Counted from the first letter of the stretch, positions 8,550-41,300 are shown. The stretch: DNA of 64,000 nucleotides from Anaeramoeba ignava BMAN (GCA_028826165.1 JAPDFW010000147.1:186001-250000); one strand, 5' to 3'. Notes: a model not told the origin generated them from the letters alone. Made by a program: numbers and translations.

Positions 8550-8641
8550 TTTTAAAAAGAAAAAAATGAAAAAAATAATTTTGGAATTTTTAATTTTAAT
8601 TAAAAAACGTTTTTTCATTTTTTTCTTTTCAAAAAAATAAA

Positions 8642-10360
8642 ATGAATTTGAATGATTGTTTATTTTTTGGTCACAATGAAAATCCAAAACTTATCAAAAA
8701 TGAATCATTTAGAATAACAAAACCAATTCAATTTAAATTTGAAAATGAAAATGAAAATGAAAATGAAAATCAAAATGAAAATAAAAATCAAATTAAACAA
8801 ATTTCATCAGGTTTCTTTTCAACAATTTTCCTTTTCAAAAATGGGAAAGCAATAGAATACTTCACTGAAGAATATTTATTTCAAAATCCAAAACAAAATC
8901 CTGAAAAAATACAAATTGAAAATATTCAAAAAGTAACTGTTGGTTTTCAAAATGAAGCTATTTTAACAAAAGAAGGAAATGTATTTGCAAAAGGAAAAGG
9001 AATTAATTCAAATAATCCAAATGAATTTATCAATATTTCATCATTAATTGAAGATAAAAATGATAGAATAATTCAAGATATTGTTTCTGGATACAGTTCA
9101 ATTTACTTATTAACTTCAAATCAAAATGCTTATGGAATTGGTTCAAATATCTCAATTAAACTCAATTCTTATTCGGTTGAAAAAAAAGAAAAACCAATTT
9201 TAATGATGAAAAATGTTTCTAAAATATTTTCAGGAAATTTTTCAAATAATACTTTTCTTTTAAATTCAAATCAAGAATTATTTGGATGTACATCAATTCC
9301 GGATGAAAGACTTGGATTGGGGAAATCAAAAGTAGCAAGAAAAACCAATAAATTAACTCAAATCCAAAATATTCCAAAAGGTAAAATAATTGATATTCAA
9401 TGTGGGTGTGCTTATTCAATAATGTTAATTGAAGATGAAAATCTAAAAAGAAAACTTTATTCATGTGGATATTATCAATATAACGGATTAGGAACATTTT
9501 TACATACTTATGAGTTTACTGAAATAGAATCACCTTTATTTCGAAATGATTATATTATTGATTTTTCTGTTGGAAATTATCATAATTTGATTTTAACTTC
9601 CAATTCAAAATTAATAGGATTTGGTTTAAATAATCATGGTCAATTAGGAACTGGAGATACCAAAAACCGAGCAATTCCAATTCAAATTGAACTTCCTAAA
9701 TTAAGATTTAATGAAGATATTTCTAATTATCATGTTTATTGTGGATCTTGGCATTCATTTCTTTATTATTCTCCTTCTTTTTCCAATCTTGAAGAAGATT
9801 TGATAAAATTATTTGAAAGAAAAGAATTTTGTGATATTTCATTTAAAACAGAAAATGGAGAAATAATTGAAGCTCATAAATTAATATTGAAATATAGATT
9901 AAATCAAAATGAAAATGAAATTGAAAAACTTCAAGAAATTATTTCAAATAAATCAATTAAAGAATCAAATCAAATATTTGAAATGATTTATTCAAACAGA
10001 ATAATAAATCCAAAATTATATTCTGAAATTAAAGAAATTATAAACTACAATGAAAAAATTGAAGAAACAATGAAAAGAATTTATTTAAATGAAAATGGAA
10101 AAGATTTTATTATTGAAAGAAAAGAAAAACAATATAAATTTCCCAAATTAATATTAATAATGAGAAGTGAATTATATCGAGGAATGTTTTTATCTGTAAC
10201 TGAAGATACTTCTAATAAAGTTACAGATTATAGTGAATTAAGTAATAAATCATTTCAATTATTAGAATATTGGATTTATTCAAATCAAATTAAAGAAGAA
10301 ATTCAAATTACAAAAGGAATAATTAATGAATTCAAACAAATCCAAATTTATTTGATTTAA
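8642..10360 (+). CDS. RCC1-repeat + tandem BTB protein, copy 3 (divergently oriented; short deletion near the C-terminus)
   Basis: 572-aa ORF with the same motifs (GLNNHGQLGTGD; CDISFK..AHKLIL; FPKLILIMRSELYRGMF). The IDYFQLNQ segment is missing, which shifts the frame of the last codons. Confidence 0.85.
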   Translation: MNLNDCLFFGHNENPKLIKNESFRITKPIQFKFENENENENENQNENKNQIKQISSGFFSTIFLFKNGKAIEYFTEEYLFQNPKQNPEKIQIENIQKVTVGFQNEAILTKEGNVFAKGKGINSNNPNEFINISSLIEDKNDRIIQDIVSGYSSIYLLTSNQNAYGIGSNISIKLNSYSVEKKEKPILMMKNVSKIFSGNFSNNTFLLNSNQELFGCTSIPDERLGLGKSKVARKTNKLTQIQNIPKGKIIDIQCGCAYSIMLIEDENLKRKLYSCGYYQYNGLGTFLHTYEFTEIESPLFRNDYIIDFSVGNYHNLILTSNSKLIGFGLNNHGQLGTGDTKNRAIPIQIELPKLRFNEDISNYHVYCGSWHSFLYYSPSFSNLEEDLIKLFERKEFCDISFKTENGEIIEAHKLILKYRLNQNENEIEKLQEIISNKSIKESNQIFEMIYSNRIINPKLYSEIKEIINYNEKIEETMKRIYLNENGKDFIIERKEKQYKFPKLILIMRSELYRGMFLSVTEDTSNKVTDYSELSNKSFQLLEYWIYSNQIKEEIQITKGIINEFKQIQIYLI

Positions 10361-12964: not shown

Positions 12965-14743
12965 TTAAATGAAATAAGTTTCAAGTTCATCAACAACCCA
13001 AGATTTAGGAGAACCAGCCAAATAAGTATAAGCTTCATTTGTTTCTTCTTTAATTCCATTAGGCAGATTATAACTAGAACCAAAATTTGAATGACCAGAA
13101 TTTAAATTAATATTTAAATGAAAATCTGGCCAATTTCCAAAACCTCCTTCTCCAAACGATGGACCTTCAGTTTCATCATATCCAATAGCATTTTGTTGTT
13201 GATCTTGTCTAATTGAGAACTTTTCAGGTTTTCGGTTATTTTTATCATTTCTTAGTGAAAAAATAAATGAATTTGGATCAATAATATATCCATTTGCAAA
13301 ATTTCGATCTTCTTTTTTCCATTTTGATTTATCATTTGTAAATCCAACTTGAGTAAATCCTCCAAAAATAAAATTTTGTTTTGTTTTGATAATAACTAAT
13401 GTTTTTCCTTGATTATCACATTTATCATGCCATTTTTGACAAGAAAATCCATCTCTTTTTGCTGAAAATCCCTTTTTCATTTTGGAAAAGAAATCATTAT
13501 CGTTTATCCATTCTTGCAATTTCTTAGCATGTTCAATATCTTTGATAATTTCTGAATCTTTTAAACTATTGATCAAATCATTTTCATGTTTGTTTTCAAT
13601 CTCTTCCTTTTTTTGTAGATTTATTTGTATTGCGGATTGTTTGTTTTCCAATTTTAATTTCATATTTTCGTTCGTTTTCTCAATTATTTCTTGATCCCTT
13701 TTCTCAATTTCTGATTTCAAATTTTCGTTTTCTTTTTCTGTCATTCCAATTTTTGTTTCTTTCTCTTTAATTTCCTTTTTCATTTGTTCGTTTTCTTTGT
13801 CTTTCTTATCAAGTTCCTTTTTCCATTTATCTTCAATTTCTGTTTTCAAATTTTCGTTTTCTTTTTTCATTTGTCGATTTTCTTTTTGTTTCACAATAAT
13901 TTGGTTATTCAAAACAACAACTTGTTTTTTTTTGATTTCCAATAAAGGTTTTTCAAGATTAACTAAAAAAGAATTTGGAAGAAAAATCTCAAATTGTTTT
14001 AATTTATCAAAATCTTGTTTTGAAATTGAGTCTTTTTCAAATAATGAAAAAAAAGAATGAAATAATCTTTTCTTTTCAAATTTCTTTTCGTTTTCTTTCT
14101 TTCCTTTTAATGATTTATTTCTTTTTTTAATCCATTGATTTAAAAATTGAAAAAAATCAAAATGAAAAATTTCTTTCTTTTCTTGTTTAAATCGAATAAA
14201 TTTGATAATTTCATCTTGAGTTAAATTGAATAAATTCCCATTATTCTTAATTTGGGAAAAATTTTGATTTATTAATTCAAAACATTTCATTTCCATTTCA
14301 TTTGAATTAATACTTCGATTTTGGAAAAAAAATTGGAAAAAATTTGAATTATTAACTGAATCTGAAATTTTTTTTTGAATAATTTTTTCCAATAAACCTA
14401 ATTTAAAATAAATTGAAATTTCTAATAATTCGAAAAGATTTTCTTGATTCTCAAAAGAAATATTTCCATGATAAATATAACTCAAAATTGATTCCATTTC
14501 TTTTTTATTAAATTGATTTAAAGAAATTTTATCAATATCATTTTCTTCTCTTAAAAACTCATTAAAAAAAGGAGATCTTGAAGATAAAATTGATTTATGA
14601 ACTTTAATTTCAAAAGGATTTGGTTCATTCTCAACAAAAATTGAAAAATCATTAAATGAATTTCCTTTTAAAAGGTTTGAATAATCTTGAATTAAATTTT
14701 TTGTTACCTTTTTTTCTAAATTTTTTTGTAAATTAATTTGCAT
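12965..14743 (-). CDS. BTB - coiled-coil - TLDc protein
   Basis: Likely ATG at 14743 (MQINLQK). BTB motif NDFSIFV..IKVHKSILSSRSPFF, an E/K-rich coiled coil, and a TLDc very similar to that of the 3199-4632 gene (WINDNDFFSKMKKGFSAKRDGFS..FGGFTQVG). Confidence 0.88.
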   Translation of the reverse strand: MQINLQKNLEKKVTKNLIQDYSNLLKGNSFNDFSIFVENEPNPFEIKVHKSILSSRSPFFNEFLREENDIDKISLNQFNKKEMESILSYIYHGNISFENQENLFELLEISIYFKLGLLEKIIQKKISDSVNNSNFFQFFFQNRSINSNEMEMKCFELINQNFSQIKNNGNLFNLTQDEIIKFIRFKQEKKEIFHFDFFQFLNQWIKKRNKSLKGKKENEKKFEKKRLFHSFFSLFEKDSISKQDFDKLKQFEIFLPNSFLVNLEKPLLEIKKKQVVVLNNQIIVKQKENRQMKKENENLKTEIEDKWKKELDKKDKENEQMKKEIKEKETKIGMTEKENENLKSEIEKRDQEIIEKTNENMKLKLENKQSAIQINLQKKEEIENKHENDLINSLKDSEIIKDIEHAKKLQEWINDNDFFSKMKKGFSAKRDGFSCQKWHDKCDNQGKTLVIIKTKQNFIFGGFTQVGFTNDKSKWKKEDRNFANGYIIDPNSFIFSLRNDKNNRKPEKFSIRQDQQQNAIGYDETEGPSFGEGGFGNWPDFHLNINLNSGHSNFGSSYNLPNGIKEETNEAYTYLAGSPKSWVVDELETYFI

Positions 14744-14838
14744 TTTTAATTTGTGTAAAAAAAAAAAAAAAGGAAAAAAATGAAAATAAATTTTCTTTTT
14801 TGAAAACAAAAATTTATTTTTTAAAGAAAAATTAATAA

Positions 14839-23940: not shown

Positions 23941-24035
23941 ATTTTTTTTGGATTATTCAAAAAAAACAAAATAAAAAGCGAAAAAATAATTTTTTGGATT
24001 TATTTTTTCATTTTTTTTTTCTCTTAAAAAGTAAA

Positions 24036-27000
24036 ATGGATATTTGGCAAATAATCGAAAACAAAGAAATTGAGATCTTGAAACAAATTGAGTCCATTTC
24101 AAAAAATAATTCACAAAAAAGAAATACACCAATTTTGAATTTTGCAATAGAAAAAAACAATTCAATAGAGATGATTAAATTACTCATTTCAAAAGGTGTT
24201 GACCCAAATTCAGTTGATCAAAAAGGAAGAAATTCATTGCATATTGCAATTATGAATAAATCTGGAGTTGATACATTTAAATTCCTGATTGAAAATGGTG
24301 TTTCTGTGAAATCAAAGGATTATAAACGCCACACAATTCTTGAATACACAATCAAATATTTGAAGAAAGATTTTACGGTTGATTTCCTCAAATATTTGAT
24401 TGAAAAAGGAATTAGTATATATACAAAAAAACCTGATAACTCAACATTATTGCATTATGCTTGTAAATACAATTCAATTGAAGTGATTGAATATTTGATT
24501 TCAAAAGGACTTGATATTAATGCTTTGACAGATGGAAAAGAAAATGTTTTGCATTTTGCTTGCCAAAAAAATTCGATTGGAGTGATTGAATACTTGATTT
24601 CAAAGGGACTTGATATCAAAACTAAAAGCGATTGGAATCAAACATCTTTGCATTATGCTTGTGAGAAGAATTCACTTGAAATGATTGAATATTTGATTTC
24701 AAAAGGACTTGATATTAAAGCTCAAACAAACCATAATCAAACATCTTTGCATTATGCTTGTCAGAATAATTCACTTGAAGTGATTGAATATTTGATTTCA
24801 AAGGGACTTGATATTAATGCTCAAACAAATCAAAATGAAACAACTTTGCATTATGCTTGTCATAATAATTCACTTGAAGTTGTTAGATGTCTTGTTGAAA
24901 AAGGAATTGATATTAAATCTGTGACAAAGCAAAACCAAACCATTTTACATTATGCCTCTCAGAGGAATTCACTTGAGGTTATCAAATATCTTGTTGAAAA
25001 AGGAGTGGATATTTTTGAGCAAACAAAATATCACAACCAAACAGCTTTGCATATGGCTTGCAAATTCAATTCTTTAGATGTTATCGAGTATCTCGTTTCA
25101 AAAGGGCTTAATATCAAAGACACAACGGAAATACAACAGACAACTTTGCATTTGGCTTGCCAATTCAATTCTTTCGAAGTTATCAAATTTCTGGTTAAAA
25201 ATGGGGTTGATGCTAACGCAGTAGCCTATTCAAACAAAACAGCTTTACATTATGCCTGTCGAGATCATTCGCTTAAAGTGATTAAGTATCTAATTAAAAA
25301 AGGAGCAGATATCAAAATAGACACAAGTCAAAATGAAACAGTTCTACATTCTGCTTGTGAAAGTAATACGCTTGATGTGATTAAGTATCTAATTGAAAAA
25401 GGAGCAGATATCAAAGCTAAAACAAACCAAAATGAAACAATGCTGCATTACGCATGCCAATCAAATTCACTTGAAGTTATTGAATATTTGATTTCAAATG
25501 GAATTGATATTAATGCGAAAACAGACAGAGATGAAACAGCTATTCATTTAGCATTCTGGAATAATTCGGTTGAGGTTATCCAGTATTTAATTTCCAAAGG
25601 CGCAGATATATTCGCAAAAACAAATGAAAATGAAACAGTTTTGCATCTTGCTTGTCATTACAACACATTTGAAATTATTACATATCTAATTGAAAAAGGA
25701 AATGTAGATGTAGACGCAAAAACAGACAGAAATGAAACACCCTTGCATTTTGCTTGCCAAAATAATTCACTTAAAATTGTCAAGTACTTGATTGAAAAAG
25801 GAAAGGCAAAAATCAATGAAAAAACAATCCAAAACAAGACAGCTCTTCATTTCGCTTCCAGGCATAGCTCATTTGAAGTTGTTCAATATCTCGTTTCCAA
25901 AGGCGCAGATATAAATGCAAAAACAGATCGAGATGAAACAATTCTTCATTCAGCCTTTTGGAATAGCTCTTTTGAAATTGTTAAATATCTCATTGAAAAC
26001 GGTGCAGATATTAATGCCAAAAAAGATCAGAATGAAACAGTTTTGCATTTAGCTTGTTGGAATAATTCCTTCGAAATTGTCAAATATTTGGTTGAGAAAG
26101 GAACTTTAGATATAAATGCAAAAACAAATCAAAGTGAAACAGCTTTACATTTTGCTTGTCATTATAGCACTTTTGAAATTGTCAAATATTTGATTGAGAA
26201 AGGCAATGCTGATATCAAAGCAAAAACAGATCAAAATCAAACACCTCTTCATTTAGCTTGTTGGCATAACTCGTTTGAGGTTGTCAAATATTTGATTGAG
26301 AAAGGTGTAGAAGTTAATGAAAAAACCAATTTAAATGAAACAGCTCTTCATTTAGCTTGTTGTGATAATTCATTTGAAATTGTCAAATATTTGGTTGAGA
26401 AAGGCAATGCTGACATCAACGCAAAAACAAATATAAACCAAACAATTCTTCATTTAGCTTGCCAATATAATTCATTTGAAGTTGTCAGATACTTGATTGA
26501 AAAACAAAATTTGGACATCAACGCAAAAACAAATAAAAATGAAACACCTCTTCATTTGGCTTGTCAATATAATTCATTTGAAGTTGTCAGATACTTGATT
26601 GAAAAAGGAAGTGATATTAATGCAGAAACAAATAGAAACGAAACAGCTCTTTCATTATCAATCGAAAAAAACAAGAAAAATTTCATCAAATTATTGTTGA
26701 TGAACGACGCAAATTTTTATGATTTGAAAAAAGAAGATTGCACAAATGAATTTTTTGATATGTTTTCTCGAATTTATTCAATTAACCAAGATTTGAGTAA
26801 CTTATTCAAATCAAATGAATTTTCTGATTTTCAGATCCAATCAAATGATTCTTTCAAATTTAATGTTCATAAATTGATTCTATTAACAAGATTTGATAAC
26901 GATGGATCAATTTTATCCAAATTTGTGAATGTTTGTAATCAAACATGCAAAGAAAATGTCCAATCTATTTTAAATTTTCTTTACACAGGATTCTTTGATT

Positions 27001-27527
27001 TTGAAAAAATTTATGGTGATTTTAAATTAAATCATGAATCAAACCAAAAGAAATGGAACAGAAAAATATTTTTGGAACCAAATCAAGAAGTAATTCAAGA
27101 ATATCAAAAATTGGAAAAATTTTTCAATGAAATTGGATTAGATTTAAATTGGATTGAATCAAAAAAGGGAAGAAAAGGAATAATAAAAGATTTTTCAAAA
27201 TTATATCAACAAAATGAGACCAAAGATTTTACAATAATAATTGAAGAAAAAGAAATTAAAATTCATAAATTAATATTAATAATAAGAAGTGAATTATTCA
27301 AAGGAATGTTTCAATTAAATGTTAATGATTCAACAAATCAAGTTCATGATTATTCAAGAAAAGCATTTGAAACAATAAATCAATTAATTTATTTCTTTTA
27401 TAATGATAAATTTAATGAAGGAGAAGAAATAACAAAAGAAATTAAAGAAGAATTTCAAGATATCAAAGATTATTATCAATTAAATCAAAATTCCATAATT
27501 GATTTACTTTTAAAAGATTTAAAATAA
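24036..27527 (+). CDS. Ankyrin-repeat (~26 repeats) + tandem BTB protein
   Basis: ATG at 24036 (MDIWQ). 33-34 aa repeats TxLHxACxxNSxEVxKYLIxKGxDIxA; BTB motifs SDFQIQS..FNVHKLILLTR and KDFTIII..IKIHKLILIIRSELFKGMF. Confidence 0.9.
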   Translation: MDIWQIIENKEIEILKQIESISKNNSQKRNTPILNFAIEKNNSIEMIKLLISKGVDPNSVDQKGRNSLHIAIMNKSGVDTFKFLIENGVSVKSKDYKRHTILEYTIKYLKKDFTVDFLKYLIEKGISIYTKKPDNSTLLHYACKYNSIEVIEYLISKGLDINALTDGKENVLHFACQKNSIGVIEYLISKGLDIKTKSDWNQTSLHYACEKNSLEMIEYLISKGLDIKAQTNHNQTSLHYACQNNSLEVIEYLISKGLDINAQTNQNETTLHYACHNNSLEVVRCLVEKGIDIKSVTKQNQTILHYASQRNSLEVIKYLVEKGVDIFEQTKYHNQTALHMACKFNSLDVIEYLVSKGLNIKDTTEIQQTTLHLACQFNSFEVIKFLVKNGVDANAVAYSNKTALHYACRDHSLKVIKYLIKKGADIKIDTSQNETVLHSACESNTLDVIKYLIEKGADIKAKTNQNETMLHYACQSNSLEVIEYLISNGIDINAKTDRDETAIHLAFWNNSVEVIQYLISKGADIFAKTNENETVLHLACHYNTFEIITYLIEKGNVDVDAKTDRNETPLHFACQNNSLKIVKYLIEKGKAKINEKTIQNKTALHFASRHSSFEVVQYLVSKGADINAKTDRDETILHSAFWNSSFEIVKYLIENGADINAKKDQNETVLHLACWNNSFEIVKYLVEKGTLDINAKTNQSETALHFACHYSTFEIVKYLIEKGNADIKAKTDQNQTPLHLACWHNSFEVVKYLIEKGVEVNEKTNLNETALHLACCDNSFEIVKYLVEKGNADINAKTNINQTILHLACQYNSFEVVRYLIEKQNLDINAKTNKNETPLHLACQYNSFEVVRYLIEKGSDINAETNRNETALSLSIEKNKKNFIKLLLMNDANFYDLKKEDCTNEFFDMFSRIYSINQDLSNLFKSNEFSDFQIQSNDSFKFNVHKLILLTRFDNDGSILSKFVNVCNQTCKENVQSILNFLYTGFFDFEKIYGDFKLNHESNQKKWNRKIFLEPNQEVIQEYQKLEKFFNEIGLDLNWIESKKGRKGIIKDFSKLYQQNETKDFTIIIEEKEIKIHKLILIIRSELFKGMFQLNVNDSTNQVHDYSRKAFETINQLIYFFYNDKFNEGEEITKEIKEEFQDIKDYYQLNQNSIIDLLLKDLK

Positions 27528-27979: not shown

Positions 27980-29303
27980 TCAAAAATCGTTATAAATGTA
28001 TTGTTGTTGGAGATTTTGATTCAAAAAAAGTAGAAATGTTAATTACTTATACAAGAAATAAATATCCAGAACAATATGTTCCATCAGTTTTTGATCGTTA
28101 TGTTTCAGATCCGAAGGGGAAACATATCAATTATCTTTATGGAGATGATTATAATCGAATTAGACCTTTAGATTATCCAAAATACATGTTGTTTTAATTT
28201 GTTTTTCTATTGCAAGAAATCAAAAATCATTTGAAAATGTTAAAAAAAATTTGAAGATGAAATTAAAAATTTATATCTCCAAAAGTTCCCAGAAAAGAAA
28301 TTCTTGTTGAACTCAATTCGAATTAAAAATTAGAAAAAAAAGAAGTTTATCTAACTTATCAAAAAGGATTGAAATGGCTAAAAATTTAATGCTTCAAAAA
28401 AATAGAATTGAATGTTCAAACAAGAACAAACAAGAGAAAATTTAAAAAAGTTTTCAAGAATCAAAAAAAAAGAATTTGAGTATGCCGATAAAGGATTATA
28501 AACAATTCAAAAAAAAAAGAAAAAGCAAAATTAAAACAAAAACAAAAAGAAGAACAAAAGAAGAAAAAAGAGGAACAAAAACAAAAAAAAGAAGAATTGA
28601 AGAGAAAAAAAGAAGAAGAGAAATTGAAGAAAAAAAATTTGGATAAATCAATTCCAAAAGTGGAAAATCCAAAAAATCAAGAAAAAGAAAAAGAAAAAGA
28701 AAAAGAAAAAGAAAAAGAAAAAGAAAAAGAAATTATCAAAACAAAATGTGTTGTTTTTGGAGATGAAAATTCTAAAAATGAATTAATATTTGAATTAATT
28801 GGAAAAGAAATATCAAAAGGAAATGAAATTATAAAACCTTTTGGAACTTATCAAAAACAATATATATTTGAAGGAAAAGAAATTGAAATAATATTTCAAA
28901 TACACCTGATAAAATAGATTATGATGGAATTAAACATACATATTATTCTGAAGCAAATTTTTTTTTAATTTGTTTTTCAATAATTTCACTTTCTTCTTTT
29001 GAAAATGTTAAATCAAAATTTATTCCTGAAATTAAACAAAATTTCCCAAATATTCCAATTATTCTTATTGGAAATGAATTTGAAAAAAGAAATAATTCAA
29101 TAATAATTGAAGAATTAAAACAAAATAATTTAGAACCAATTACATATGAAAAAGGAATAAGAACAGCAAAAAAAAGTAAAATGTTAAAATATGTGGAATG
29201 TTCTTTTGAAACTAAAAAGAATTTAACAACAATTTTAGAAACAGTTTCAAGATTAAGTCTTAAATCAAACAATCAAACAGAAAAATCAAATAATCAAAAA
29301 TAA
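27980..29303 (+). pseudogene. Two-domain atypical Rho gene (Rho - K/E-rich linker - divergent Rho-like domain); first domain heavily disrupted
   Basis: YKCIVVGDFDSKKVEMLITY..YPEQYVPSVFD followed by multiple indels. The second domain (KCVVFGDENSKNE..FLICFSI..FENVKSKFIPEI..IILIGNEFEKR..YVECSFE) has one 1-nt deletion near 28900 and a stop at 29301-29303. Confidence 0.7.
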
Positions 29304-30380
29304 TTAAATAATCAAATAATCAAATAATTAAATAATTAAATAATCAAATAATCAAATAATTAAATAATCAAATAATTAAATAATCAAATAATCAAAAATA
29401 ATTAAATAATCAAATAATCAAATAATCAAATAATCAAATAATAAAATAATTAAATAATTAAATAATTAAATAATTAAATAATCAAATAATTAAATAATCA
29501 AATAATCAAATAATTAAATAATGAAATAATTAAATAATTAAATAATCAAATAATTAAAAATAATTAAAAATCAAATAATCAAATAATCAAATAATTCAAA
29601 TAAAAATAAATAATCAAATAATGAAAAATAATTAAATAATTAAAAATAATCAAATAATCAAAATTAAATAATAAATAATTAAATAATTAAATAATTAAAT
29701 AATTAAATAATTAAATAATTAAATAATAAATAATCAAATAATCAAATAATCAAATAATTAAATAATCAAATAATAAATAATTAAATAATTAAATAATTAA
29801 AAATAATTAAATAATTAAATAATCAAATAATAAATAAAATTAAATAATCAAATAATCAAATAATGAAATAATCAAATAATTAAATAATTAAATAATCAAA
29901 TAATTAAATAATTAAATAATCAAATAATCAAATAATTAAATAATCAAATAATAAATAATTAAATAATTAAATAATTAAATAATCAAATAATGAAATAATC
30001 AAATGATGAAATAATCAAATAATTAAATAATCAAATAATCAAATAATTAAATAATCAAATAATCAAATAATCAAATAATTAAATAATTAAATAATTAAAT
30101 AATCCCAAATAATCAAATAATCAAATAAATTAAATAATTAAATAATTAAAAATAAATAATTAAATAATTAAATAATCAAATAATCAAATAATCAAATAAT
30201 TAAATAATCAAATAATCAAATAATCAAATAATGAAATAATGAAATAATCAAATAATTAAATAATTAAATAATTAAATAATCAAATAATTAAATAATTAAA
30301 TGATGAAATAATTAAATAATGAAATAATTAAATAATTAAATAATTAAATAATCAAATGATGAAATAATCAAATAATTAAA
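29304..30380 (+). repeat. Octamer satellite (AAATAATY)n
   Basis: AAATAATC/AAATAATT/AAATAATG units; the same repeat occurs at ~27635-27735 and ~36855-37090. Confidence 0.9.
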
Positions 30381-30497
30381 TAGTTTCTCAAATAATTTCT
30401 TAAATGATCAAAATAAAAAAGCAAAAAAATTTTTCAATTTTTAATTTTCAATTTTTTAATTTTCATTTTTTTCGTTTTTTTAAATCCAAAAATAAAA

Positions 30498-31178
30498 ATG
30501 AAATCAGTTAAATGTGTTGCTGTTGGAAATGTTGAATCCAAAAAAACGGAAATGTTATATACTTACACAACACAACAATGGCAAAAACATTTCGATCCAA
30601 CTTTTCATAATTATTCATGCAATTACCAACTAGATGGAGATTATATAGGTTTAAGTTTATGGGATACAGCAGGTCAAGAAGATTATGATAGACTGAGACC
30701 TTTATCTTATCCAAATACAAATATTTTTTTGATATGTTTTTCTATTGCTAATCAAAAATCATTTGAAAGTATTAAAAATAAATGGATTCCTGAACTTAAA
30801 GAACATGCTCCAAATGTTCCATTTATTCTTGTTGGAACTCAATTAGAAAAAAGAGACAATCCAAAAACAATTAATAAATTAAAAGAAAAAGGTTTATCTC
30901 CAATTACTTATCAGCAAGGATTTGAACTAGCAAAAGAAATTAATTCTTTTAAATATTTAGAATGTTCTGCAAGAAATAAGGTTAATATTAATGAAGTTAT
31001 TGAAGAAGCAGTTAGAGCTGCTCAAAATCAAACAATGTCGAAAAAACAATTGAAGAAAAAAGAAAGAGAACAATTAAAGAAAAAACAAAAAGAAGAGAAA
31101 TTGAAAAAAAAAGAAGAATTGAAGAAAAAAAAAGAGGAAGAAAAGAAAAAAAAGCAAGAAGAGAAGAAAAAAAAATAA
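30498..31178 (+). CDS. Atypical Rho-family GTPase with a polybasic tail and no CAAX
   Basis: LWDTAGQEDYDRLRPLSYP, Rho insert, YLECSAR. The P-loop reads GNVESKKT and G4 reads TQLE. Confidence 0.9.
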   Translation: MKSVKCVAVGNVESKKTEMLYTYTTQQWQKHFDPTFHNYSCNYQLDGDYIGLSLWDTAGQEDYDRLRPLSYPNTNIFLICFSIANQKSFESIKNKWIPELKEHAPNVPFILVGTQLEKRDNPKTINKLKEKGLSPITYQQGFELAKEINSFKYLECSARNKVNINEVIEEAVRAAQNQTMSKKQLKKKEREQLKKKQKEEKLKKKEELKKKKEEEKKKKQEEKKKK

Positions 31179-31185
31179 GAAAAGA

Positions 31186-32215
31186 AACTGAAATCAAAAT
31201 CAAAATCAAAATCAATATCAAAACCAAAATCAAAATCAAAATCAAAATCAAAATCAAAATCAAAATCAAAATCAAAATCAAAATCAAAATCAAAATCAAA
31301 ATCAAAATCAAAATTGAAATTGAAATTGAGATGGTTAAACTACTCCTTTTAAAATTAAAATCATGATTAAAATTAAAATCAAAATCAAAATCAAAATCAA
31401 AATCAAAATCAAAATCAAAATCAAAATCAAAATCAAAATCAAAATCAAAATCAAAATCAAAATCAAAATCAAAATCAAAATCAAAATCGAAAAAATCAAA
31501 ATCAAAATCAAAATCCAAAATTGAAATCAAAATCAAAATCAAAATCCAAAATCAAAATCAAAATCAAAATCAAAATCAAAATCAAAATCAAAATCAAAAT
31601 CAAAATCAAAATCAAAATTGAAATTGAAATCAAAATTAAAATCAAAATCAAAATCAAAATCAAAATCAAAATCAAAATCAAAATCAAAATCAAAATCAAA
31701 ATCAAAATCAAAATCAAAATCAAAATCAAAATCAAAATCAAAATCAAAATCAAAATCAAAATCAAAATCAAAATCAAAATCAAAATCAAAATTAAAATCC
31801 AAATTCAAATCAAAATCAAAATCAAATTCAAAATCAAAATCAAAATTGAAATTGAAATTGAGATGGTTAAACTACTCCTTTTAAAATTAAAATTATGATT
31901 AAAATTAAAATCAAAATCAAAATCAAAATCAAAATCAAAATCAAAATTAAAATCCAAAATCAAAATCAAAATCAAAATCAAAATCAAAATCAAAATCAAA
32001 ATCAAAATCAAAATCAAATTCAAAATCAAAATTAAAATCAAAATCAAAATCAAAATTGAAATCAAAATTGAAATCAAAATTAAAATCAAAATCAAAATCA
32101 AAATCAAATTCAAAATTGAAATTGAAATTGAGATGGTTAAACTACTCCTTTTAAAATTGAAATCAAAATCAAAATGAAAATCAAAATCAAAATGAAAATC
32201 AAAACCAAAATCAAA
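31186..32215 (+). repeat. (AAAATC)n microsatellite containing three copies of a GAGATGGTTAAACTACTCCTTTT cassette
   Basis: Cassette copies at 31328-31350, 31860-31882 and 32130-32152. Confidence 0.9.
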
Positions 32216-32299
32216 AATTCCAAATTTAAAAAAAATAAAAAATTTTGCTTTTTTTTATTTTTCATTTTTCATTTTTCATTTTTTAAAAAAAAAAAGAAA

Positions 32300-34857
32300 A
32301 TGTCAGAAGAAACAAAGAAACAAGTTAAACTAATTATTGTTGGAGATCAAGAATCAAAAAAAACTGAAATGATAATGACTTATGCAAATGGTCAATATCC
32401 AACAGATTATGTTCCAACAGTTTTTGATAATTACGTAAAGAATTTATTTGTTGATGGAAATGAATTTGAATTAAGTTTATGGGATACAGCAGGACAAGAA
32501 GATTATGATATGCTTAGACCTTTAGCTTATCCTGGAACAAATGTTGTTTTAATTTGTTTTTCTATTGATAACAAAAATTCATTTGAAAATGTTAAAAACA
32601 AATGGATTCCTGAAATCAATCAATATCTTCCAAATGTTCCATTTATTCTTGTTGGAACTCAAAGTGAATTAAGAGATGATTTCCAAACTATTAATAAATT
32701 ATCACAAAAAGGATTATCTCCAATTAGTTATCAACAAGGATTTGGTTTATCAATAGAAGTTAAAGCTACTAAGTATATTGAATGTTCTGCTAGAAATCAA
32801 GTTAATATAAATGAAGTTTTTGAAGAAGCAGTTAGAGCTGTTAATTATTCTTCAGAATTTGATACTACAGAAAATTATTCTGAACAACAAAACCCATTTG
32901 ATGTTGGATTTGAAAAACCATTTGATATTGGATTTGAAAAACCATTACAAACCAATGAGACAGCATATCAAGAAGAAACAAAGAAACAAGTTAAACTAAT
33001 TATTGTTGGAGATCAAGAATCAAAAAAAACCGAAATGATAATGACTTATGCAAATGGTCAATATCCAACAGATTATGTTCCAACAGTTTTTGATAATTAT
33101 ATAAAGAATTTATTTATTGATGGAAATGAATTTGAATTAGGCTTATGGGATACAGCAGGACAAGATGATTACGATATGCTTAGACCTTTAGCTTATCCTG
33201 GAACAAATGTTGTTTTGATTTGTTTTTCTATTGATAACAAAAATTCATTTGAAAATGTTAAAAACAAATGGGTTCCTGAAATCAATCAATATCTTCCAAA
33301 TGTTCCATTTATTCTTGTTGGAACTCAAAGTGAATTAAGAGATGATTTCCAAACTATCAATAAATTATCACAAAAAGGATTATCTCCAATTAGTTATCAA
33401 CAAGGATTTGGTTTATCAATGGAAGTTAAAGCTACTAAGTATATTGAATGTTCTGCTAGAAATCAAGTTAATATTAATGAAGTTTTTGAAGAAGCAGTTA
33501 GAGCTGTTAATTATTCTTCAGAATTTGATACTACAGAAAATTATTCTGAACAACAAAAACCCATTTGATTTTGGATTTGAAAAACCATTTGATGTTGGAT
33601 TTGAAAAACCATTACAAACCAATGAAACAGCATATCAAGAAGAAACAAAGAAACAAGTTAAATTAGTTATTGTTGGAGATCAAGAATCAAAAAAAACTGA
33701 AATGATAATGACTTATGCAAATGGTCAATATCCAACAGATTATGTTCCAACAATTTTTGATAATTATATAAAGAATTTATTTGTTGATGGAAAGTGAATT
33801 TGAATTAGACTTATGGGATACAGCACCTCAAGAAGATTATGATATGACTTAGACCTTTAACTTATCCTGGAACAAATGTTGTTTTGATTTGTTTTTCTAT
33901 TGATAACAAAGAATCATTTGAAAATGTTAAAAACAAATGGATTCCTGAAATTCAACATCACTGTACAAATGTTCCTTTTATTCTTGTTGGAACTCAAAGT
34001 GAATTAAGAGATGATTTCCAAACTATCAATAAATTATCACAAAAAGGATTATCTCCAATTAGTTATCAACAAGGATTTGGTTTATCAATAGAAGTTAAAG
34101 CTACTAAATATATTGAATGTTCTGCTAGAAATCAAGTTAATATAAATGAAGTTTTTGAAGAAGCAGTTAGAGCTGTTAATTATTCTTCAGAATTTGATAC
34201 TACAGAAAATTATTCTGAACAACAAAAACCATTTGATGTTGTGGATTTGAAAAACCATTTGATATTGGATTTGAAAAACCATTACAAATCAATGAAACAG
34301 CATATCAAGAAGAAACAAAGAAATCAATTAAATGTGTTTTTGTTGGAGATCAAGAATCAAAAAAAACCGAAATGATAATGACTTATGCAAATGGTCAATA
34401 TCCAACAGATTATGTTCCAACAGTTTTTGACAATTACGTAAAGAATTTATTTGTTGATGGAAATGAATTTGAATTAGGTTTATGGGATACAGCACCTCAA
34501 GAAGATTATGATAGACTTAGACCTTTATCTTATCCAAATACAAATGTTGTTTTAATTTGTTTTTCTATTGTTAATCAAAAATCATTTGAAAATGTTAAAA
34601 ACAAATGGGTTCCTGAAATCAATCAATATCTTCCAAATGTTCCATTTATTCTTGTTGGAACTCAAAGTGAATTAAGAGATGATTTCCAAACTATTAATAA
34701 ATTATCACAAAAAGGATTATCTCCAATTAGTTATCAACAAGGATTTGGTTTATCAATAGAAGTTAAAGCTACTAAATATATTGAATGTTCTGCTAGAAAT
34801 CAAATCAATTTAAATGAAGTTTTTGAAGAAGCAGTTAGAGTTGGTTCTTTTTATTAA
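32300..34857 (+). CDS. Protein with four tandem Rho-like domains (~850 aa if 5 inserted bases are errors)
   Basis: 666-bp unit with starts at 32306, 32972, 33639 and 34309. Units 1-2 are in one open frame. Relative to unit 1 there are extra bases near 33560 (+1), 33794 (+1), 33847 (+1) and 34241 (+2). Each domain has GDQESKKT, YVPT(V/I)FDNY, WDTA(G/P)Q, GTQSELR and ECSAR. Confidence 0.8.
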
Positions 34858-34994
34858 AACTTTTAAAACATTCTTTCTTTTTCTTTCATCATTTTCTTTT
34901 CATCATTTTCTTTTTCTTTTTCTTTTTCTTTCATCATTTTCTTTCATCATTTTCTTTAATTCAAAAAAAGAATAAAAAATCAAAAATCCATTTT

Positions 34995-35303
34995 TTTCTT
35001 TTTGAAAATGTTAAATTAAAATTTATTCCTGAAATTAAACAAAATTTCCCAAATATTCCAATTATTCTTATTGGAAATGAATTTGAAAAAAGAAATAATT
35101 CAATAATAATTGAAGAATTAAAACAAAATAATTTAGAACCAATTACATTTGAAAAAGGAATAAGAACAGCAAAAAAAAGTAAAATGTTAAAATATTTGGA
35201 ATGTTCTTTTGAAACTAAAAAGAATCTAACAACAATTTTAGAAACAGTTTCAAGATTAAGTTTTAAATCAAACAATCAAACAGAAAAATCAAATAATCAA
35301 AAA
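34995..35303 (+). pseudogene. Orphan 3' fragment of the divergent second Rho-like domain (duplicate of ~28995-29303)
   Basis: Near-identical to 28995-29300 but preceded by unrelated sequence. Confidence 0.75.
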
Positions 35304-35558
35304 TAATTTTTCTTCTTTTTCTTTTTCTTCTTCTTTTTTTTGGATTAATTTTAAGAAAATTTAAATAAAAAATAATTTTAATTTTTAATATTAAATCTTT
35401 TAAATTTCCTCAAATAAATAAAATAATAAAGGAAAAATAAATTTTTAATTAAATTATTTCTTATTCCAAATTTTTTTTTCCTCTTTTTTAATTTTTTTTT
35501 TTTCATTTTTTTATTTTCAAAACAAAATTAATAAAAAGAAAATATCAATTTAATTCCA

Positions 35559-36850
35559 ATGCCTGGTTATAAATGTGTTTTTGTTGGAGATAAAGAATCA
35601 AAAAAAACAGAAATGATAATTACTTATTTGAAAGGTGAATATCCAGAAAAATATGTTCCATCAGTTTTTGAAAATCAAGATGTATATGTTGAATTAGAAA
35701 GGAAAACATTTCAATTACGTTTATGGGATACAGGAGGTCAAAATGATTATGATAGACTTAGACCTTTATCTTATCCAAATACAAATGTTGTTTTAATTTG
35801 TTTTTCTATTGTTAATCAAAAATCATTTGAAAATGTTAAAAACAAATGGATTCCTGAAATTCAACATTTTTGTCCAAAAGTTCCATTTATTTTAGTTGGA
35901 ACTGAATTAGATAAAAGAGATGATCAAGAAACAATTAATGAATTAAAAGAAAAAGGTTTATCTCCAATTACTTATCAACAAGGATTGGAAATGGCTAAAG
36001 AATTTAAAGCTTTTAATTATATTGAATGTTCTGCAAGAAAACAACAAAATTTAAAAGAAGTTTTTCAAGAAGCAGTTAGAGCATCTAGAAATCCAAAATA
36101 TTATATACAATTCAAAAAGAAGAAAGAAAAAGAAGAAAAAGCAAAATTAAAACAAAAACAAAAAGAAGAACAAAAGAAGAAAAAAGAGGAACAAAAGAAA
36201 AAAAAAGAAAAAGAAAAGAAAAAGCAAAATTGAAAGAAAAAAATTTAAAATGAAAATCAATTCAAAAAGTGGAAAAAACCAAAAATTTTTAAAATAAAAG
36301 AAATTATCAAAAAGAAAAAGAAAAAGAAAAAAAAAGAAAAAGAAAAAGAAAATAAAAGAAATATCAAAACAAAATAATTGGAATTAAATTTAAAAAAATT
36401 AATATTTGAATTAATTTGAAAGAAATATCAAAAAGGAAATCCTTTTATAAAAACCTTTTTGGAACTTATCAAAAAAATATATATTTGAAGGAAAAGAAAT
36501 TGAAATAATATTTCAAGATAAAACCTGATAAAAATTTAATGGCGAAGCAAATTTTTAATTTATTTTTTGAAATATAGATTTTATTTTCTTTAAAATGTTA
36601 AATCAAAATTTTTAATCTGAAATTAAACAAAATTTCCCAAAATAAATTAAAAAGAAATAATTCAATAATAATTGAAGAATTAAAAACAAAATTTTTGAAA
36701 ACCAATTACATATGAAAAAGGAATAAGAACAGCAAAAATAAAATGTTAAAATAATGGAATGTTCTTTTTAAAAATAAAAAGAATTTAACAAAATTTTTAA
36801 AAACAGTTTAAAGATTTGAATTAAATTCAAATTTAATCAAACAGAAAAAA
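35559..36850 (+). CDS. Atypical Rho GTPase (intact ORF 35559-36233) followed by a disrupted copy of the linker and second Rho-like domain
   Basis: GDKESKKT, YVPSVFEN, LWDTGGQNDYDRLRPLSYP, GTELDKR, ECSAR. Sequence 36234-36850 is colinear with 28620-29300 but full of indels. Upstream 35304-35558 duplicates ~27735-27980. Confidence 0.75.
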
Positions 36851-37339
36851 TAAATAAATTAAATAATCAAATAATCAAATAATCAAATAATTAAATAATT
36901 AAATAATTAAATAATTAAATAATGAAATAATCAAATAATTAAATAATCAAATAATCAAATAATCAAATAATTTTTAAATAATTAAATAATTAAATAATTA
37001 AATTTTGATTAAAAATATAATCAAAAATAATCAAATAATCAAATAATCAAATAATCAAAATATAAATAATTAAATAATTAAATAATGAAAAATCAAAAAT
37101 AATTTTTCTTTTTTTTTTTCTTTTTCTTTTTTTGGATTAATTTTAAGAAAATTTAAATAAAAATAATTTTAATTTTCAATATTAAATCTTAAATTTCCTA
37201 AATAAAAATAAATAAAATAATAAATAAAGTAAAAATAAATTTTTAAATTAAATTAATTTAATTTCAAATTTTTAATTTATTTTTTATTCCAAATTTTTAA
37301 ATTTTATTTTTATTTTCAAAAACAAAATTAATAAAAATA

Positions 37340-37960
37340 TAATAAATAATTTAATTAAATTTATTAAAAATGTGTTTTGATTTGAGTAAAGAATCAAAAT
37401 TTGATAATTACTTTTTAAAATATAGAATATAAAAAAAAATATTTCCATCAAAGTTTTTGAAAATAATTTTTTAAATGTTGAATTAAAAAAAAATTTAATT
37501 AAATTTATTAAAAAGGAAGTCAAGATGATTTGATAAACTTAGACCTTTAAATTATCCTAATTCAAATATTTTTTAATTTGTTTTTCTATTGCTAATTAAA
37601 AATATTTTAAATTTAAAGAAAAATGGATTTGAAATTCAAATTTTTTAAATAAAAATTTCCTTTTATAAGTTGGAACTGAATTAGATAAAAAAGATGATAA
37701 GAAACAATTAATGAATTAATTTAAAAAATTTTTAAAATTACTTTTCAACAAGGATTATAAATTTTAAAAAAATTTTTGCTTTTAATTATATTGAAATAAA
37801 AATTTTAATAAAAAATTTAATTAAATTTTTTAAAAGCAGTTATTGATTAGAATTAAAATTTTATATACAATTAAAAAAAAGAAAGAATTTTAAGAAAAAT
37901 ATAAAATTAAAAACAAAAACAAAAAGAAAACAAAAGAAGAAAAAATTTTCTAAAGAAAAA
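37340..37960 (+). pseudogene. Highly degraded third copy of the 35559 Rho gene (relic or mis-polished consensus)
   Basis: Residual matches AATGTGTTTT..AAAGAATCAAAA, CTTAGACCTTTA..TATCC, TTTGTTTTTCTATTG, GTTGGAACTGAATTAGATAAA and CAACAAGGATT. Upstream 37100-37340 matches the same 5' flank. Confidence 0.65.
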
Positions 37961-38309: not shown

Positions 38310-41300
38310 ATGAATGAAGAAGATACATTAACAAATATAGGCACAAGAATATTATCACTTCTTCCACATAAAAAAATAGAATTTTCAGAAACTTATTCAG
38401 TTTTTATTCCAAAAGAATTTATAAATAATTCACTTCAAATGGAAAATGATTTACTTGTTTCTTTATCTTTAACAAGATTTAATTCAGTTTTTAAAGTTTT
38501 AACTAATTTACTTGATGATATTTCTTTAAAAAATACTGATTTGGAAAGTCATAAATTAATTCAAGTTCAACGTTCTTTTTTAATTATTTTTGAATTAATG
38601 TTTCAATCTTTGGAAAATTCTTATCAATTAGTATTTGTTTTTATTGAAAAATTCATTTATAAAATTAAAATTAAAATTAAAATTAAAATTAAAATTAAAA
38701 TTAAAATTAAAATTAAAATTAAAATTAAAATTAAAATTAAAATTAAAATTAAAATTAAAATTAAAATTAAAATTAAAATTAAAATTAAAATTAAAATCAA
38801 AATTAAAATTAAAATTAAAATTCAAAATTAAAATTAAAATTAAAATTAAAATTAAAATTAAAATTTAAAATAATTTAGAGTGATCAAGAAATTGAAAATC
38901 TTAAAAATCAAAATCAAACTCAAAATTTAATAGATGATTATTTAGCATTTAGATTTGTTCTTTTATTAATAAATGTTAATTTTGAATTTGAACATGGTTC
39001 TTATTCAAATATGTTTACAGAATATTTTGAAAAACTTATTAGAAGAGTTTCTCATATAAATTATATACAAATTTTTAATCAAGTTATTGAAGCATTACAA
39101 GCAATTAAATCAGGAAATGAAGATGTTCAAATTCGAAAATTAAATTTAATTAAATATCTTGATTATGATAATATAAAATTATCAGAATTATTTCGTGTTT
39201 TAAATCAATATTTTACTTATTTCAAAAAAAATCACACAAAATTAATTTCAGAAGTTTTAAAAGAAGGTTAATTTATTTAGAAATTTATTTAATAATTTAT
39301 TTAAAAATTTATTTAAAAATTTATTTAAAAATTTATTTAATAATTTATTTAAAAATTTATTTAAAAATTTATTTAAAAATTTATTTAATAATTTATTTAA
39401 AAATTTATTTAAAAATTTATTTAAAAATTTATTTAAAAATTTATTTAAAAATTTATTCCTATTTAAAAATTTTTAATAATTTATTTAAAAATTTATTTAA
39501 AAATTTATTTAAAAATTTATTTAAAATTTTTATTTAAAAATTTATTTATTTAATTTTATTTAAAAATTTATTTAATAATTTATTTTTTAATTTATTTAAT
39601 AATTTATTTAAAAATTTATTTAATAATTTATTTAATAATTTATTTAAAAATTTATTTAATAATTTATTTAAAAATTTATAATTTATTTAAAAATTTATTT
39701 AAAATTTATTTTTAAAAATTTATTTAATAATTTATTTAATAATTTATTTAAAATTTATTTAAAAATTTATTTAAAAATTTATTTTAAAAATTTATTTAAA
39801 ATTTATTTAATAATTTATTTTAAATTTATTTAAAAATTTATTTAATTTAAAAATTTATTTAAAAATTTTATTTATTAATTTATTTTAATAATTTATTTAA
39901 TAATTTATTTAAAATTTATTTAATTTATTTAATAATTTATTTAATAATTTATTTAAAAATTTATTTAATAATTTATTTAATAATTTATTTAAAAATTATT
40001 TAAAAATTTATTTAAAAATTTATTTAAAAATTTATTTAAAAATTTATTTAAAAATTTATTTAAAATTTATTTAAAAATTTATTTAAAAATTTATTTAAAA
40101 ATTTATTTAAAAATTTATTTTAATTTAATTTATTTAATAATTTATTTAATAATTTAATAATTTATTTAATAATTTATTTTAATAATTAATTTAATAAATA
40201 ATTTATTTAATAATTTATTTAATAATTTATTTAATAATTTATTTAAAAATTTATTTTATTTAATAATTTATTTAAAAATTTATTTAAAAATTTATTTAAT
40301 AATTTATTTAATAATTTATTTAATAATTTATTTAAAAATTTATTTAAAAATTTATTTAAAAATTTATTTAAAAATTTATTTAATAATTTATTTAATAATT
40401 TATTTAATAATTTATTTAAAAATTTATTTAAAAATTTATTTAAAAATCAGGAATATGGAATTGGATTAATCATCGACCATCACAATTTACAGAATTATCA
40501 CAATCCAAAAAAACAATGGAAGGAAATCCAGATACTTTATTTGATTATTTTCAAAAACATGGACAAGAATTAAAAAAAGAAAGTCATTTATTTTGGCCAA
40601 CAGAAACAATGTTATTAATTTTATGTCCTGATATTTTAATTTCACTTACAATGGGAGATAAACAAGCTTTATCAAGTTCAAAAGGAATATTTTTTAATGA
40701 ATTACAATCTTCTCTTAAATTAAAAGGTGAAATATCCGATATGGCTGCTAGATGTTTAGTTGATTTTTGTCAAGCTTCTACATATGTTTCTAAAGCAGAT
40801 ATTTCTGGTTTAAGATATCTTGTTCCAATTATTAGACCTGATTTAAATGTAGAATATTTTAAACAATTAAAATTAAAATTAAAATTAAAATTAAAATTAA
40901 AATTAAAATTAAAATTAAAATTAAAATTAAAATCAAAATAAAAATTAAAATTAAAATTAAAATTAAAAAAATTAAAAATCCTAAATTAAAATTTTTAAAA
41001 TTAAAATTAAAATTAAAAATAAAAATTAAAAAAAAATTAAAATTAAAATTCATGTAAAAAATCAAAAATTTGTCAAAAATCCCAAAATTAAAATCAAAAT
41101 CAAAATTAAAATTAAAATTAAAATCAAAAATTAAAAATTAAAATCAAATTTAAATTAAAATATTTTAAAAATTAAAATTAAAATTAAATTAAATCAAAAA
41201 TTAAAATCAAAAATTAAAAATTAAAATTAAAATTAAAATTAAAATCAAAATTAAAATCAAAATAAAAATTAAAATTAAAATTAAATCAAAATTAAAATTA

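Follow-up and report, generated by a model that had tools for sequence, protein, structure and literature searches.

A cluster of Rac-derived domains with a rewritten nucleotide pocket and a retained partner face in Anaeramoeba ignava

Introduction

The genome of the free-living anaerobic amoeba Anaeramoeba ignava BMAN (GCA_028826165.1; 42.8 Mb in 147 contigs) contains a cluster of ten Rac-like domain copies in which the nucleotide pocket has been rewritten and the face that meets partner proteins has been kept. The cluster occupies positions 27,980 to 37,960 of the window, by which we mean the whole stretch of 64,000 nucleotides analysed here (JAPDFW010000147.1:186001-250000; G000:C137:186001-250000 in our own numbering), and positions are counted from its first letter unless another contig is named. 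That the cluster derives from Rac and combines a rewritten pocket with a kept partner face we regard as close to certain. At a probability of roughly 0.55, we consider that it is best explained as a whole by lineage-specific, non-cycling and non-prenylated Rac mimics that would bind regulators, likely guanine nucleotide exchange factors (GEFs); judging from their motifs, the open genes probably encode non-cycling pseudoGTPases.

The window is eukaryotic DNA and extremely A+T-rich, with a GC content of 8-30%. The published assembly has an A+T content of 80.65% and derives from Nanopore reads, which were polished by Racon, Nanopolish and Pilon (two rounds) (PMC11550330).

Results

The nucleotide pocket is rewritten

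The Rac-like copies are distributed over the following features.

27985..29310, plus strand: decayed two-domain pseudogene, in which a K/E-rich linker joins a Rac-like domain (27994-28467, with GDFDSKKV) to a B-type pseudo-Rho domain
30498..31178, plus strand: P0001, an open single-exon gene of 226 amino acids (open reading frame, ORF; Pfam Ras E 1e-39; 52% identity to Rac1)
32174..33568, plus strand: repeat units 1 and 2, an open ORF of 464 amino acids with two Pfam Ras domains (E 2.5e-88)
33569..34300, plus strand: repeat unit 3, broken, with GDQESKKT at 33675, DTAPQ at 33817 and tblastn matches running through frames 3, 1 and 2
34312..34857, plus strand: repeat unit 4, with GDQESKKT at 34345, DTAPQ at 34486 and TQSE
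35001..35303, plus strand: C-terminal half of a B-type pseudo-Rho domain, with NEFE at 35070 (tblastn, reference residues 90-189)
35559..36233, plus strand: P0024, an open single-exon gene of 224 amino acids (ORF; Pfam Ras E 1e-41; annotated NCBI/UniRef protein)
37530..37900, plus strand: heavily decayed remnant resembling the 35559 gene (three-frame reading; motif match at 37669)

A six-frame motif scan of the window located eight P-loops, none of which has the G1 consensus GxxxxGK[ST]: GDFDSKKV at 28009, GDENSKNE at 28759, GNVESKKT at 30525, GDQESKKT at 32342, 33008, 33675 and 34345, and GDKESKKT at 35586. Gly15 is replaced by Lys in all eight, and position 12 is occupied by K, V, Q, F or E. 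The G4 consensus [NT]KxD is likewise missing, the sites reading TQSE (four times), TQLE at 30831, TELD at 35895 (and in the remnant at 37669) and NEFE at 29067 and 35070. The rewritten P-loops, the G4 variants and two instances of DTAPQ thus stand exactly where the original prediction, made from the DNA of the window, had placed them.

Residues were compared in detail for the five readable A-type domains of the window, the same five that were used for the tree and the codon model below. Within them the changes at the P-loop form a block (Gly12 to K, V or Q; A13E, V14S, G15K, C18E and L19M) that continues through residue 31, and the residues that confer guanine specificity are altered as well: K116, lost in all copies of the cluster, has become Q or E, D118 has become E in four of five (P0024 keeps it within TELD), and SAR replaces SAL at G5 (L160R). 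Rewriting the canonical GDGAVGKTCLL to GDQESKKTEMI requires about 15 nucleotide changes per 33 bases. Of 112 alignment columns that are at least 90% conserved among canonical Racs, 53 are unchanged in all five domains, and the departures that the five share cluster at residues 12-31, 116, 118 and 160. A degenerate DNA pattern for G[DN]x[ED/N]SKKT was matched seven times in the 42.8-Mb genome, six times in the window and once on contig C83, compared with 0 and 1 matches for the reversed control, so the clustering of the motif is not due to chance; in this genome scan the SKKT pattern was confined to the present cluster and C83.

The partner face is kept

Outside this block the domains remain recognizably Rac. 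All copies match the Pfam Ras family (PF00071) with E values of 1e-18 to 1e-88 (1e-39 to 1e-88 for the ORFs), the best solved relative is Rac1 at 52-57% identity, and the best matches to sequences in the PDB are all Rac1, Rac2, Rac3, RhoG or Cdc42. The beta-core, Trp56, switch II and the Rho insert stay Rac-like; the motif scan recovered switch II as DYD[RM]LRPL[SA]YP, and the Rho insert aligns gap-free to that of Rac1, bearing out the proposed derivation from Rac/Rho with switch II and insert retained. With respect to G2 and G3, P0001, P0024 and units 1 and 2 have Thr or Ser at position 35 as well as DT[AG]GQ, and units 3 and 4 read DTAPQ. Switch I had also been described as kept, which holds for the four repeat units, where the scan found the canonical YVPTVFDNY, but not for P0001, in which one residue is deleted (FDPT-FHNY), or for P0024, in which the segment has diverged.

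None of the copies has a Cys among its last residues, and no ORF ends in a CAAX box, the C-terminal signal for prenylation, as had been predicted along with the Lys-rich tails of some copies. Canonical paralogues in the same genome end in CSIL, CFIL or CILN; in P0001 and P0024 the box is replaced by a K/E-rich tail.

The cluster is a birth-and-death array

The cluster does not amount to one uniform family. Three of its loci (30498-31178, 35559-36233 and the two-domain ORF at 32174-33568) have remained open, five or six of its ten domain copies are disrupted, and three copies, besides the broken repeat units, are plainly dead. Decayed copies were judged by three-frame reading together with tblastn, and stops were counted within the matches of the genome search.

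Among the open genes, P0001 combines the P-loop GNVESKKT with TQLE and SAR, and its exact sequence is an annotated protein in NCBI/UniRef. P0024 carries GDKESKKT, DTGGQNDYDRLRPLSYP, TELD and SAR. The 464-residue ORF, for which Met43 (32300) is the likely start, encodes units 1 and 2, which are about 97% identical and each contain GDQESKKT, YVPTVFDNY, DTAGQ[ED]DYDMLRPLAYP and TQSE. At the DNA level the four tandem units (32300-34857) share 92-97% identity. Additional bases throw units 3 and 4 out of frame, namely one A within an A-run of unit 2, near 33555, and three additions in unit 3 (G at 33794, A at 33847, TG at 34240-34241); what had been read as one four-domain gene is therefore open only through units 1 and 2 and would need four frame corrections to be read through. 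Some of these breaks may be polishing errors in a near-identical repeat, or they may be real. Unit 4 (87-89% identity to unit 1) is in another frame than units 1 and 2, lacks a stop codon of its own and ends, tailless, in VRVGSFY. The protein collection that we searched holds no annotated protein of 232-738 amino acids from the four-unit locus.

The eight P-loop variants had been taken to come from readable genes, but two of them, GDFDSKKV and GDENSKNE, belong to the dead gene at 27985-29310. Its start Met is absent, WDTAGQ is deleted, and three-frame reading reveals frame changes and several stops; the tblastn high-scoring segment pairs are split, and the genome-search matches contain two TGA and four TAA in one case and three TGA in the other. 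The B-type domain of this pseudogene has GDENSKNE at 28759 and NEFE at 29067, and the fragment at 35001-35303 is a near copy of 28899-29300 whose N-terminal half was not found by three-frame reading. In the remnant at 37530-37900, FDKLRPLNYP, LICFSIAN*, VGTELDKKDD and FAFNYIE are spread over three frames with many stops, one of them directly before VGTELD.

Relatives in the genome, origin and probable gene conversion

At least 149 Rho-like matches are present in the genome. The nearest relatives of the window genes form a paralogous cluster on the minus strand of contig C83 (C83:7.5-17 kb; L031:7564-9776 and L032:1-6900), inside a larger duplicated segment. It is made up of double-GTPase genes, each a Rac domain, a linker and a pseudo-Rho domain, with open ORFs of 461 and 615 amino acids, and includes P0272 (KAJ5072106.1); the pseudogene at 27985-29310 has the same architecture as these two ORFs. 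The first domains on C83 keep Gly12 and Gly15 within GDGGIGK[IR] or GDGRIGKI, in which the Mg-binding Thr17 has become Ile or Arg, and have LKLD at G4. In the second, B-type domains all five G motifs are lost (GDENSKK[TN], IPKPF, DTSDK, NELE and NSLE).

In a tree calculated without the P-loop and G4 columns, the five window domains group together (98/97) with C83:7564 as their sister (95/83), and their clade falls inside the Rac-like radiation, apart from the B-type domains; the placement among canonical Racs that had been suggested as a check is thereby provided. A quick tree had grouped the window domains with B-type domains and with domains on C52 and C68 that have odd P-loops, a grouping that the tree without P-loop and G4 columns rejects. 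The shared departures, an uninterrupted block at residues 12-31 together with 116, 118 and 160, and the grouping of the five domains in one clade point to a single origin of the rewritten pocket in the common ancestor of the five A-type domains. The SKKT P-loop itself may be convergent or may have been copied from an SKKT-type domain by conversion of a short patch. Exchange between the two clusters is evident in one place, revealed by sliding-window comparison.

35960..36200, plus strand: putative conversion or recombination tract with 97-100% DNA identity to C83:7564-8214

Outside the tract, the 5' half and the flanks of the gene are only 50-80% identical to the C83:7564 gene, and we read the tract as the probable product of recent ectopic gene conversion or recombination between the two clusters.

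Odd P-loops such as GDDNSQRT and GDVESQKT also occur on C52/C27, C68 and C82. One of these genes, at C52:3055-4275 (L039) and duplicated on C27 (L048), encodes a two-domain Rho protein with GDSKVGQN and GDDNSQRT as P-loops and NRVE and NQNE at G4; it ends in a CAAX box (CSIF) and would, from its sequence, be a prenylated double pseudo-Rho. Four Rho-like proteins of other eukaryotes (P0149, P0178, P0182 and P0207), one of them a multidomain protein of 1307 amino acids, have Glu or Asp in place of Gly15 (GDKASEKT, GDNECEKT, GDKEADKT and GDHDADKT), so that Rho domains seem to have lost this glycine more than once and independently. Genome-wide, the Rho family of A. ignava is hugely expanded and forms long tandem arrays (for example C61:204-236 kb, C61:108-114 kb and C60:1204-1209 kb), among which are seven identical canonical Rac copies and an array in which DTAGQE has become DPTGGE.

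Open copies are under purifying selection

The codon model was GY+F3X4, fitted by maximum likelihood, and omega, the ratio of non-synonymous to synonymous substitution rates (dN/dS), was tested against 1 by 2dlnL.

Five readable window domains: omega 0.20, 2dlnL 58.6, omega=1 rejected
Eight dispersed canonical Rho genes of the same genome: omega 0.16, 2dlnL 275.8, omega=1 rejected
Canonical C60 tandem array: omega 0.31, 2dlnL 24.9, omega=1 rejected
C83 first domains: omega 0.52, 2dlnL 5.7

The value for the window domains is to be read with the caveat, raised again below, that gene conversion among copies violates the single-tree assumption of the model. Across seven copies the amino acids ESKKTEM are invariant, and the codons vary (ACC, ACT, ACG and ACA for Thr17; TCA and TCC for Ser14). 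The open genes (P0001, P0024 and the repeat units) are mutually 61-65% identical in protein; in an AT-biased neutral simulation, 2-3% of ORFs were still open at 5% divergence and fewer than 0.1% at 10%. Because of the low omega, the invariant ESKKTEM with its synonymous variation and the poor survival of neutral ORFs, we conclude that the open copies are under purifying selection and have been coding under constraint since they gained the loop. The proposal of a selected family therefore stands for these copies, but not for the cluster at large, about half of whose ten domain copies are broken.

Fold and docking models

The AlphaFold2 (AF2) model of P0024 residues 1-190 has a Rac fold (predicted local distance difference test, pLDDT, 88.9; predicted template modelling score, pTM, 0.86) and, like the canonical control, an insert helix (123-131), although this fold is driven by an alignment mostly of canonical Racs. 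A Foldseek search with the model returned Rac1 with template modelling (TM) scores of 0.88-0.95 and a root-mean-square deviation of 1.3-1.5 A, and the top 50 hits were all Rho family. At residues 12-14 AF2 predicts a helical turn in P0024, where the model built from the identical alignment for a canonical Rac of A. ignava shows a loop. The structure prediction that had been suggested for the P-loop thus gives a weak hint that the phosphate site may be remodelled.

The genome encodes at least 127 matches to the DH domain of RhoGEFs, a single RhoGDI gene and at least four CRIB loci. Docked onto a DH-PH GEF of the same genome (L051:1483-2610), P0024 scored 0.79 compared with 0.45 for the best control, a score that may reflect the model's memory of solved Rac-DH complexes and does not distinguish binding from a dead copy; the docking mark is reached by 51 of 78 solved complexes and by 2 of 108 mismatched pairs. 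Three runs shared at least 97% of contacts, partner pLDDT was at least 89, and the contacts on P0024 (residues 31-41, 52-56 and 59-74) make up the classical switch I/II interface. Since Rac-DH complexes have already been solved, we take the docking model to indicate that the interface of P0024 is still Rac-like, binding itself being predicted only.

The neighbourhood of the cluster

BTB genes are abundant around the cluster (3199-4632, 7107-10360, 12965-14809 and 23994-27527), with BTB-BACK-TLDc, RCC1-BTB, BTB-TLDc and ankyrin-repeat plus BTB architectures. The last of them, an ankyrin-repeat plus BTB gene of 1177 amino acids at 23994-27527, stops 450 bp upstream of the Rho cluster; this adjacency may mean nothing, BTB genes being so common here. 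We considered that the cluster and this upstream gene might form a RhoBTB-like 'split' gene, and rejected the idea on account of the frequency of BTB genes in the window and the lack of anything comparable in the 3 kb beyond the C83 cluster.

The spacers between genes hold long A/T-rich microsatellites that code for (KI)n, (KS)n and (LI)n (31012-32113 and 38600-38870) and give spurious ORFs on both strands. Just downstream of the cluster, positions 38367-38531 are matched at 98% by KAJ5072105.1 (M0811_09485), which is encoded on C83; the annotated model of this protein appears to fuse the last Rho gene of C83 with a downstream gene, a homologue of window 38310-38831.

Discussion

The cluster described here appears to document how a Rac can lose its switch and keep its surface. 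We propose that in an ancestral A-type Rac the P-loop and the block of helix alpha-1 were rewritten, the guanine-specificity residues changed and the CAAX box lost. Replacement of the Walker-A Gly by a bulky Lys, combined with loss of the Lys and Asp of NKxD, would stop cycling, and guanine nucleotide would most likely not be held, making the proteins similar to class i pseudoGTPases, which are defined by the absence of both nucleotide binding and catalysis (PMC12490416). By virtue of the retained regulator and effector face, the proteins could then serve as nucleotide-independent, cytosolic binding modules acting through switch II and beta2-beta3. They would behave like Rac1 G15A, that is, as a permanently empty Rac that sits tightly on DH-type exchange factors, and GEFs, of which the genome has more than 100 DH-type matches, would be titrated or scaffolded according to the proteins' own expression level.

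Loss of nucleotide binding is inferred from G15K, the loss of G4 and an engineered precedent: Rac1 and RhoG carrying G15A bind neither GDP nor GTP and have high affinity for GEFs (PMC3408411). We read the open genes as non-cycling and probably nucleotide-free because even this small substitution abolishes binding, and here the residue is Lys and NKxD is replaced in addition. A role as decoy or scaffold for regulators, as originally suggested, is compatible with the docking of P0024 onto a DH-type GEF, but that agreement is model-based. That the proteins act specifically as GEF traps is a tentative proposal. Still bolder, and in our view doubtful, is the idea that they are natural empty-state Rac mimics with a self-occluded pocket, formed by E13, K15 and E18 on the phosphate side and E118 and R160 on the base side, and which, single-domain or concatenated, would be high-affinity DH ligands and dominant-negative for the more than 100 GEFs, their P-loop cassette having been spread by short-tract conversion.

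Several observations weigh against the proposal of nucleotide-free, regulator-binding Rac mimics, in addition to the cautions already attached to the codon model, the AF2 fold and the docking score. First, K16, T17, T35, D57 and Q61 are kept, as is G60 in three of five domains, which would be unexpected in a pocket that has long been empty, particularly as the truly degenerate B-type domains have lost them. Second, about half of the cluster copies are broken. Third, the EukProt set derived from transcriptomes contains canonical Rac but lacks P0001, P0024 and the two-domain ORF; this is weak evidence, because one canonical-looking paralogue is missing from the set too. Fourth, pairwise dN/dS by the method of Nei and Gojobori (NG86) is about 1. 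We do not take this as a sign of neutrality, given the 80% A+T bias, the high NG86 values that canonical tandem arrays likewise give and the reversal of the picture under F3X4; the method is unreliable here because the third-position changes that mutation allows are mostly A/T transversions, and in two-fold codons such changes alter the amino acid. For this genome its dN/dS values are too high by a factor of two to five when set against the maximum-likelihood model that takes codon frequencies into account.

Retention of K16, T17, T35, D57 and Q61 is also what keeps alive a different interpretation, namely that the proteins are constitutively loaded, GTPase-dead atypical Rho proteins, resembling Rnd and RhoH or having an altered base specificity through TQxE and SAR, which would be regulated by expression and degradation instead of by GEFs and GAPs (GTPase-activating proteins). 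These ligands of phosphate and Mg are kept under selection, position 12 is occupied by K, V or Q, which recalls mutants insensitive to GAPs, and the conservative Asp to Glu change in G4, alongside L160R, could reshape the base pocket and not abolish it. However, Rnd and RhoH retain GxxxxGK[ST] and NKxD, whereas here Gly15 is Lys in every copy and K116 and D118 are both replaced in four of the five readable domains; AF2 places a helical turn at 12-14 where the canonical control has its phosphate-binding loop; and the milder G15A already removes nucleotide binding in Rac1 and RhoG (PMC3408411). We consider such loaded proteins unlikely.

It is more unlikely again that the whole cluster is dead or dying, with open ORFs that are silent recent duplicates and a P-loop that is a mere marker of descent. 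The five or six broken domain copies, the multi-domain locus without an annotated protein in the collection, the absence of the open genes from the transcriptome-derived set and the NG86 ratio of about 1 would all fit this scenario. It is contradicted by the divergence of P0001, P0024 and the repeat units, which at 61-65% identity are open and all carry ESKKTEM, a state that under neutrality fewer than 0.1% of ORFs would reach at 10% divergence, by a maximum-likelihood omega of 0.20 with omega=1 rejected and differences within the P-loop that are synonymous only, and by the neighbouring copies that are truly dead, which carry at least six stops per domain. Of the two estimates of dN/dS that the suggested check has thus produced, it is the maximum-likelihood value that speaks for selection, the other being attributable to AT bias. 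A sequencing or assembly artefact, although near-identical tandem units are hard to polish in an assembly based on Nanopore reads (PMC11550330), is very improbable, as the original prediction had held: it would account for the frame breaks only and not for the rewritten motifs, the changes in P-loop and G4 are multi-nucleotide and repeated in seven copies that otherwise differ by up to 39%, and long ORFs of 1177, 1790 and 2369 amino acids nearby are intact.

Compared with known systems, the Rac mimics proposed here share with Rac1 and Cdc42 52-57% identity over the G domain, the fold, the Rho insert, Trp56, the switch II sequence DYDRLRPLSYP and, in the repeat units, YVPTVFDNY; they differ in G[DN]x[ED]SKKT for GDGAVGKT, TQxE or TELD for TKxD, SAR for SAL and the lack of CAAX. 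With the Rac1 G15A and RhoA G17A GEF traps they have in common replacement of the same Walker-A glycine with the switch surfaces left intact, and P0024 is predicted to dock DH through switch I/II; unlike these reagents they are natural, have a larger substitution (Lys) and show further pocket changes. Class i pseudoGTPases (the pG1 and pG2 domains of p190RhoGAP, the psGD of AAGAB, CENP-M and the second GTPase-like domain of RhoBTB) likewise pair a G fold and broken G motifs with a presumed protein-binding role, but they are very divergent and have lost nearly all G motifs, whereas the window proteins rewrite only G1, G4 and G5, keep G2 and G3 intact and are more than 50% identical to Rac1. The B-type domains of C83 are a closer analogue of that class. 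The double-GTPase genes of C83 are paralogous to the window genes, have the same K/E-rich tails and the only other SKKT P-loop in the genome, and share a tract with P0024; there, however, the SKKT loop belongs to a second domain that is fully degenerate, in contrast to the otherwise Rac-like domains that carry it in the window.

The signature had been described as unlike those of Rnd, RhoH, RhoBTB and Miro, with which we agree. In Rnd and RhoH, which are prenylated and bind GTP, the P-loop glycine and NKxD are intact, and GTP-locked Rho proteins of this type are substituted solely at the catalytic residues 12, 59 and 61. Rnd1-3 and RhoH resemble the window proteins in being non-cycling members of the Rho family with substitutions at position 12, but in the window G1 and G4 are themselves rewritten, Gln61 is kept and CAAX is absent. 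In RhoBTB proteins a single polypeptide joins a Rho domain to tandem BTB domains; Pfam finds no BTB match in the ORFs of the cluster, the nearest BTB domain belonging to the separate gene at 23994-27527. Miro proteins have two GTPase domains flanking EF hands and a C-terminal transmembrane anchor, and Pfam gives matches of the Ras, Roc and Arf type only in the window ORFs, with no EF hand.

A Rho domain with an SKKT loop was not seen outside A. ignava in an exhaustive profile search of 1.84 billion representatives and in word-index searches; as the representatives stand for clusters at 50% identity and canonical Racs dominate the results, members in A. flamelloides and A. pumila may escape. 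The proteins are annotated as 'hypothetical', and, in line with the expectation that the family had not been reported before, we found no description of them in the literature. The Anaeramoeba genome paper does not mention Rho (PMC11550330), and a preprint on A. pumila deals with canonical Rac1-like genes only and their transfer to a symbiont.

Research on pseudoGTPases is young, and those known are ancient and highly diverged, whereas here the step from a live to a switch-less Rac is visible almost in progress: a live Rac, a Rac mutated at T17, a Rac with a rewritten pocket and a fully degenerate Rho domain are all found in two paralogous clusters of one genome. Should the proteins be nucleotide-free and yet stable, they would reveal how a G domain can be stabilized without its ligand and would constitute a natural counterpart of the G15A and G17A reagents used for GEF capture; should they bind nucleotide after all, they would redefine what the Walker-A loop can tolerate. 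If nucleotide-free and stable, these Rac mimics would also add an extra regulatory layer in an organism with an unusually large repertoire of Rho, GEF and BTB proteins.

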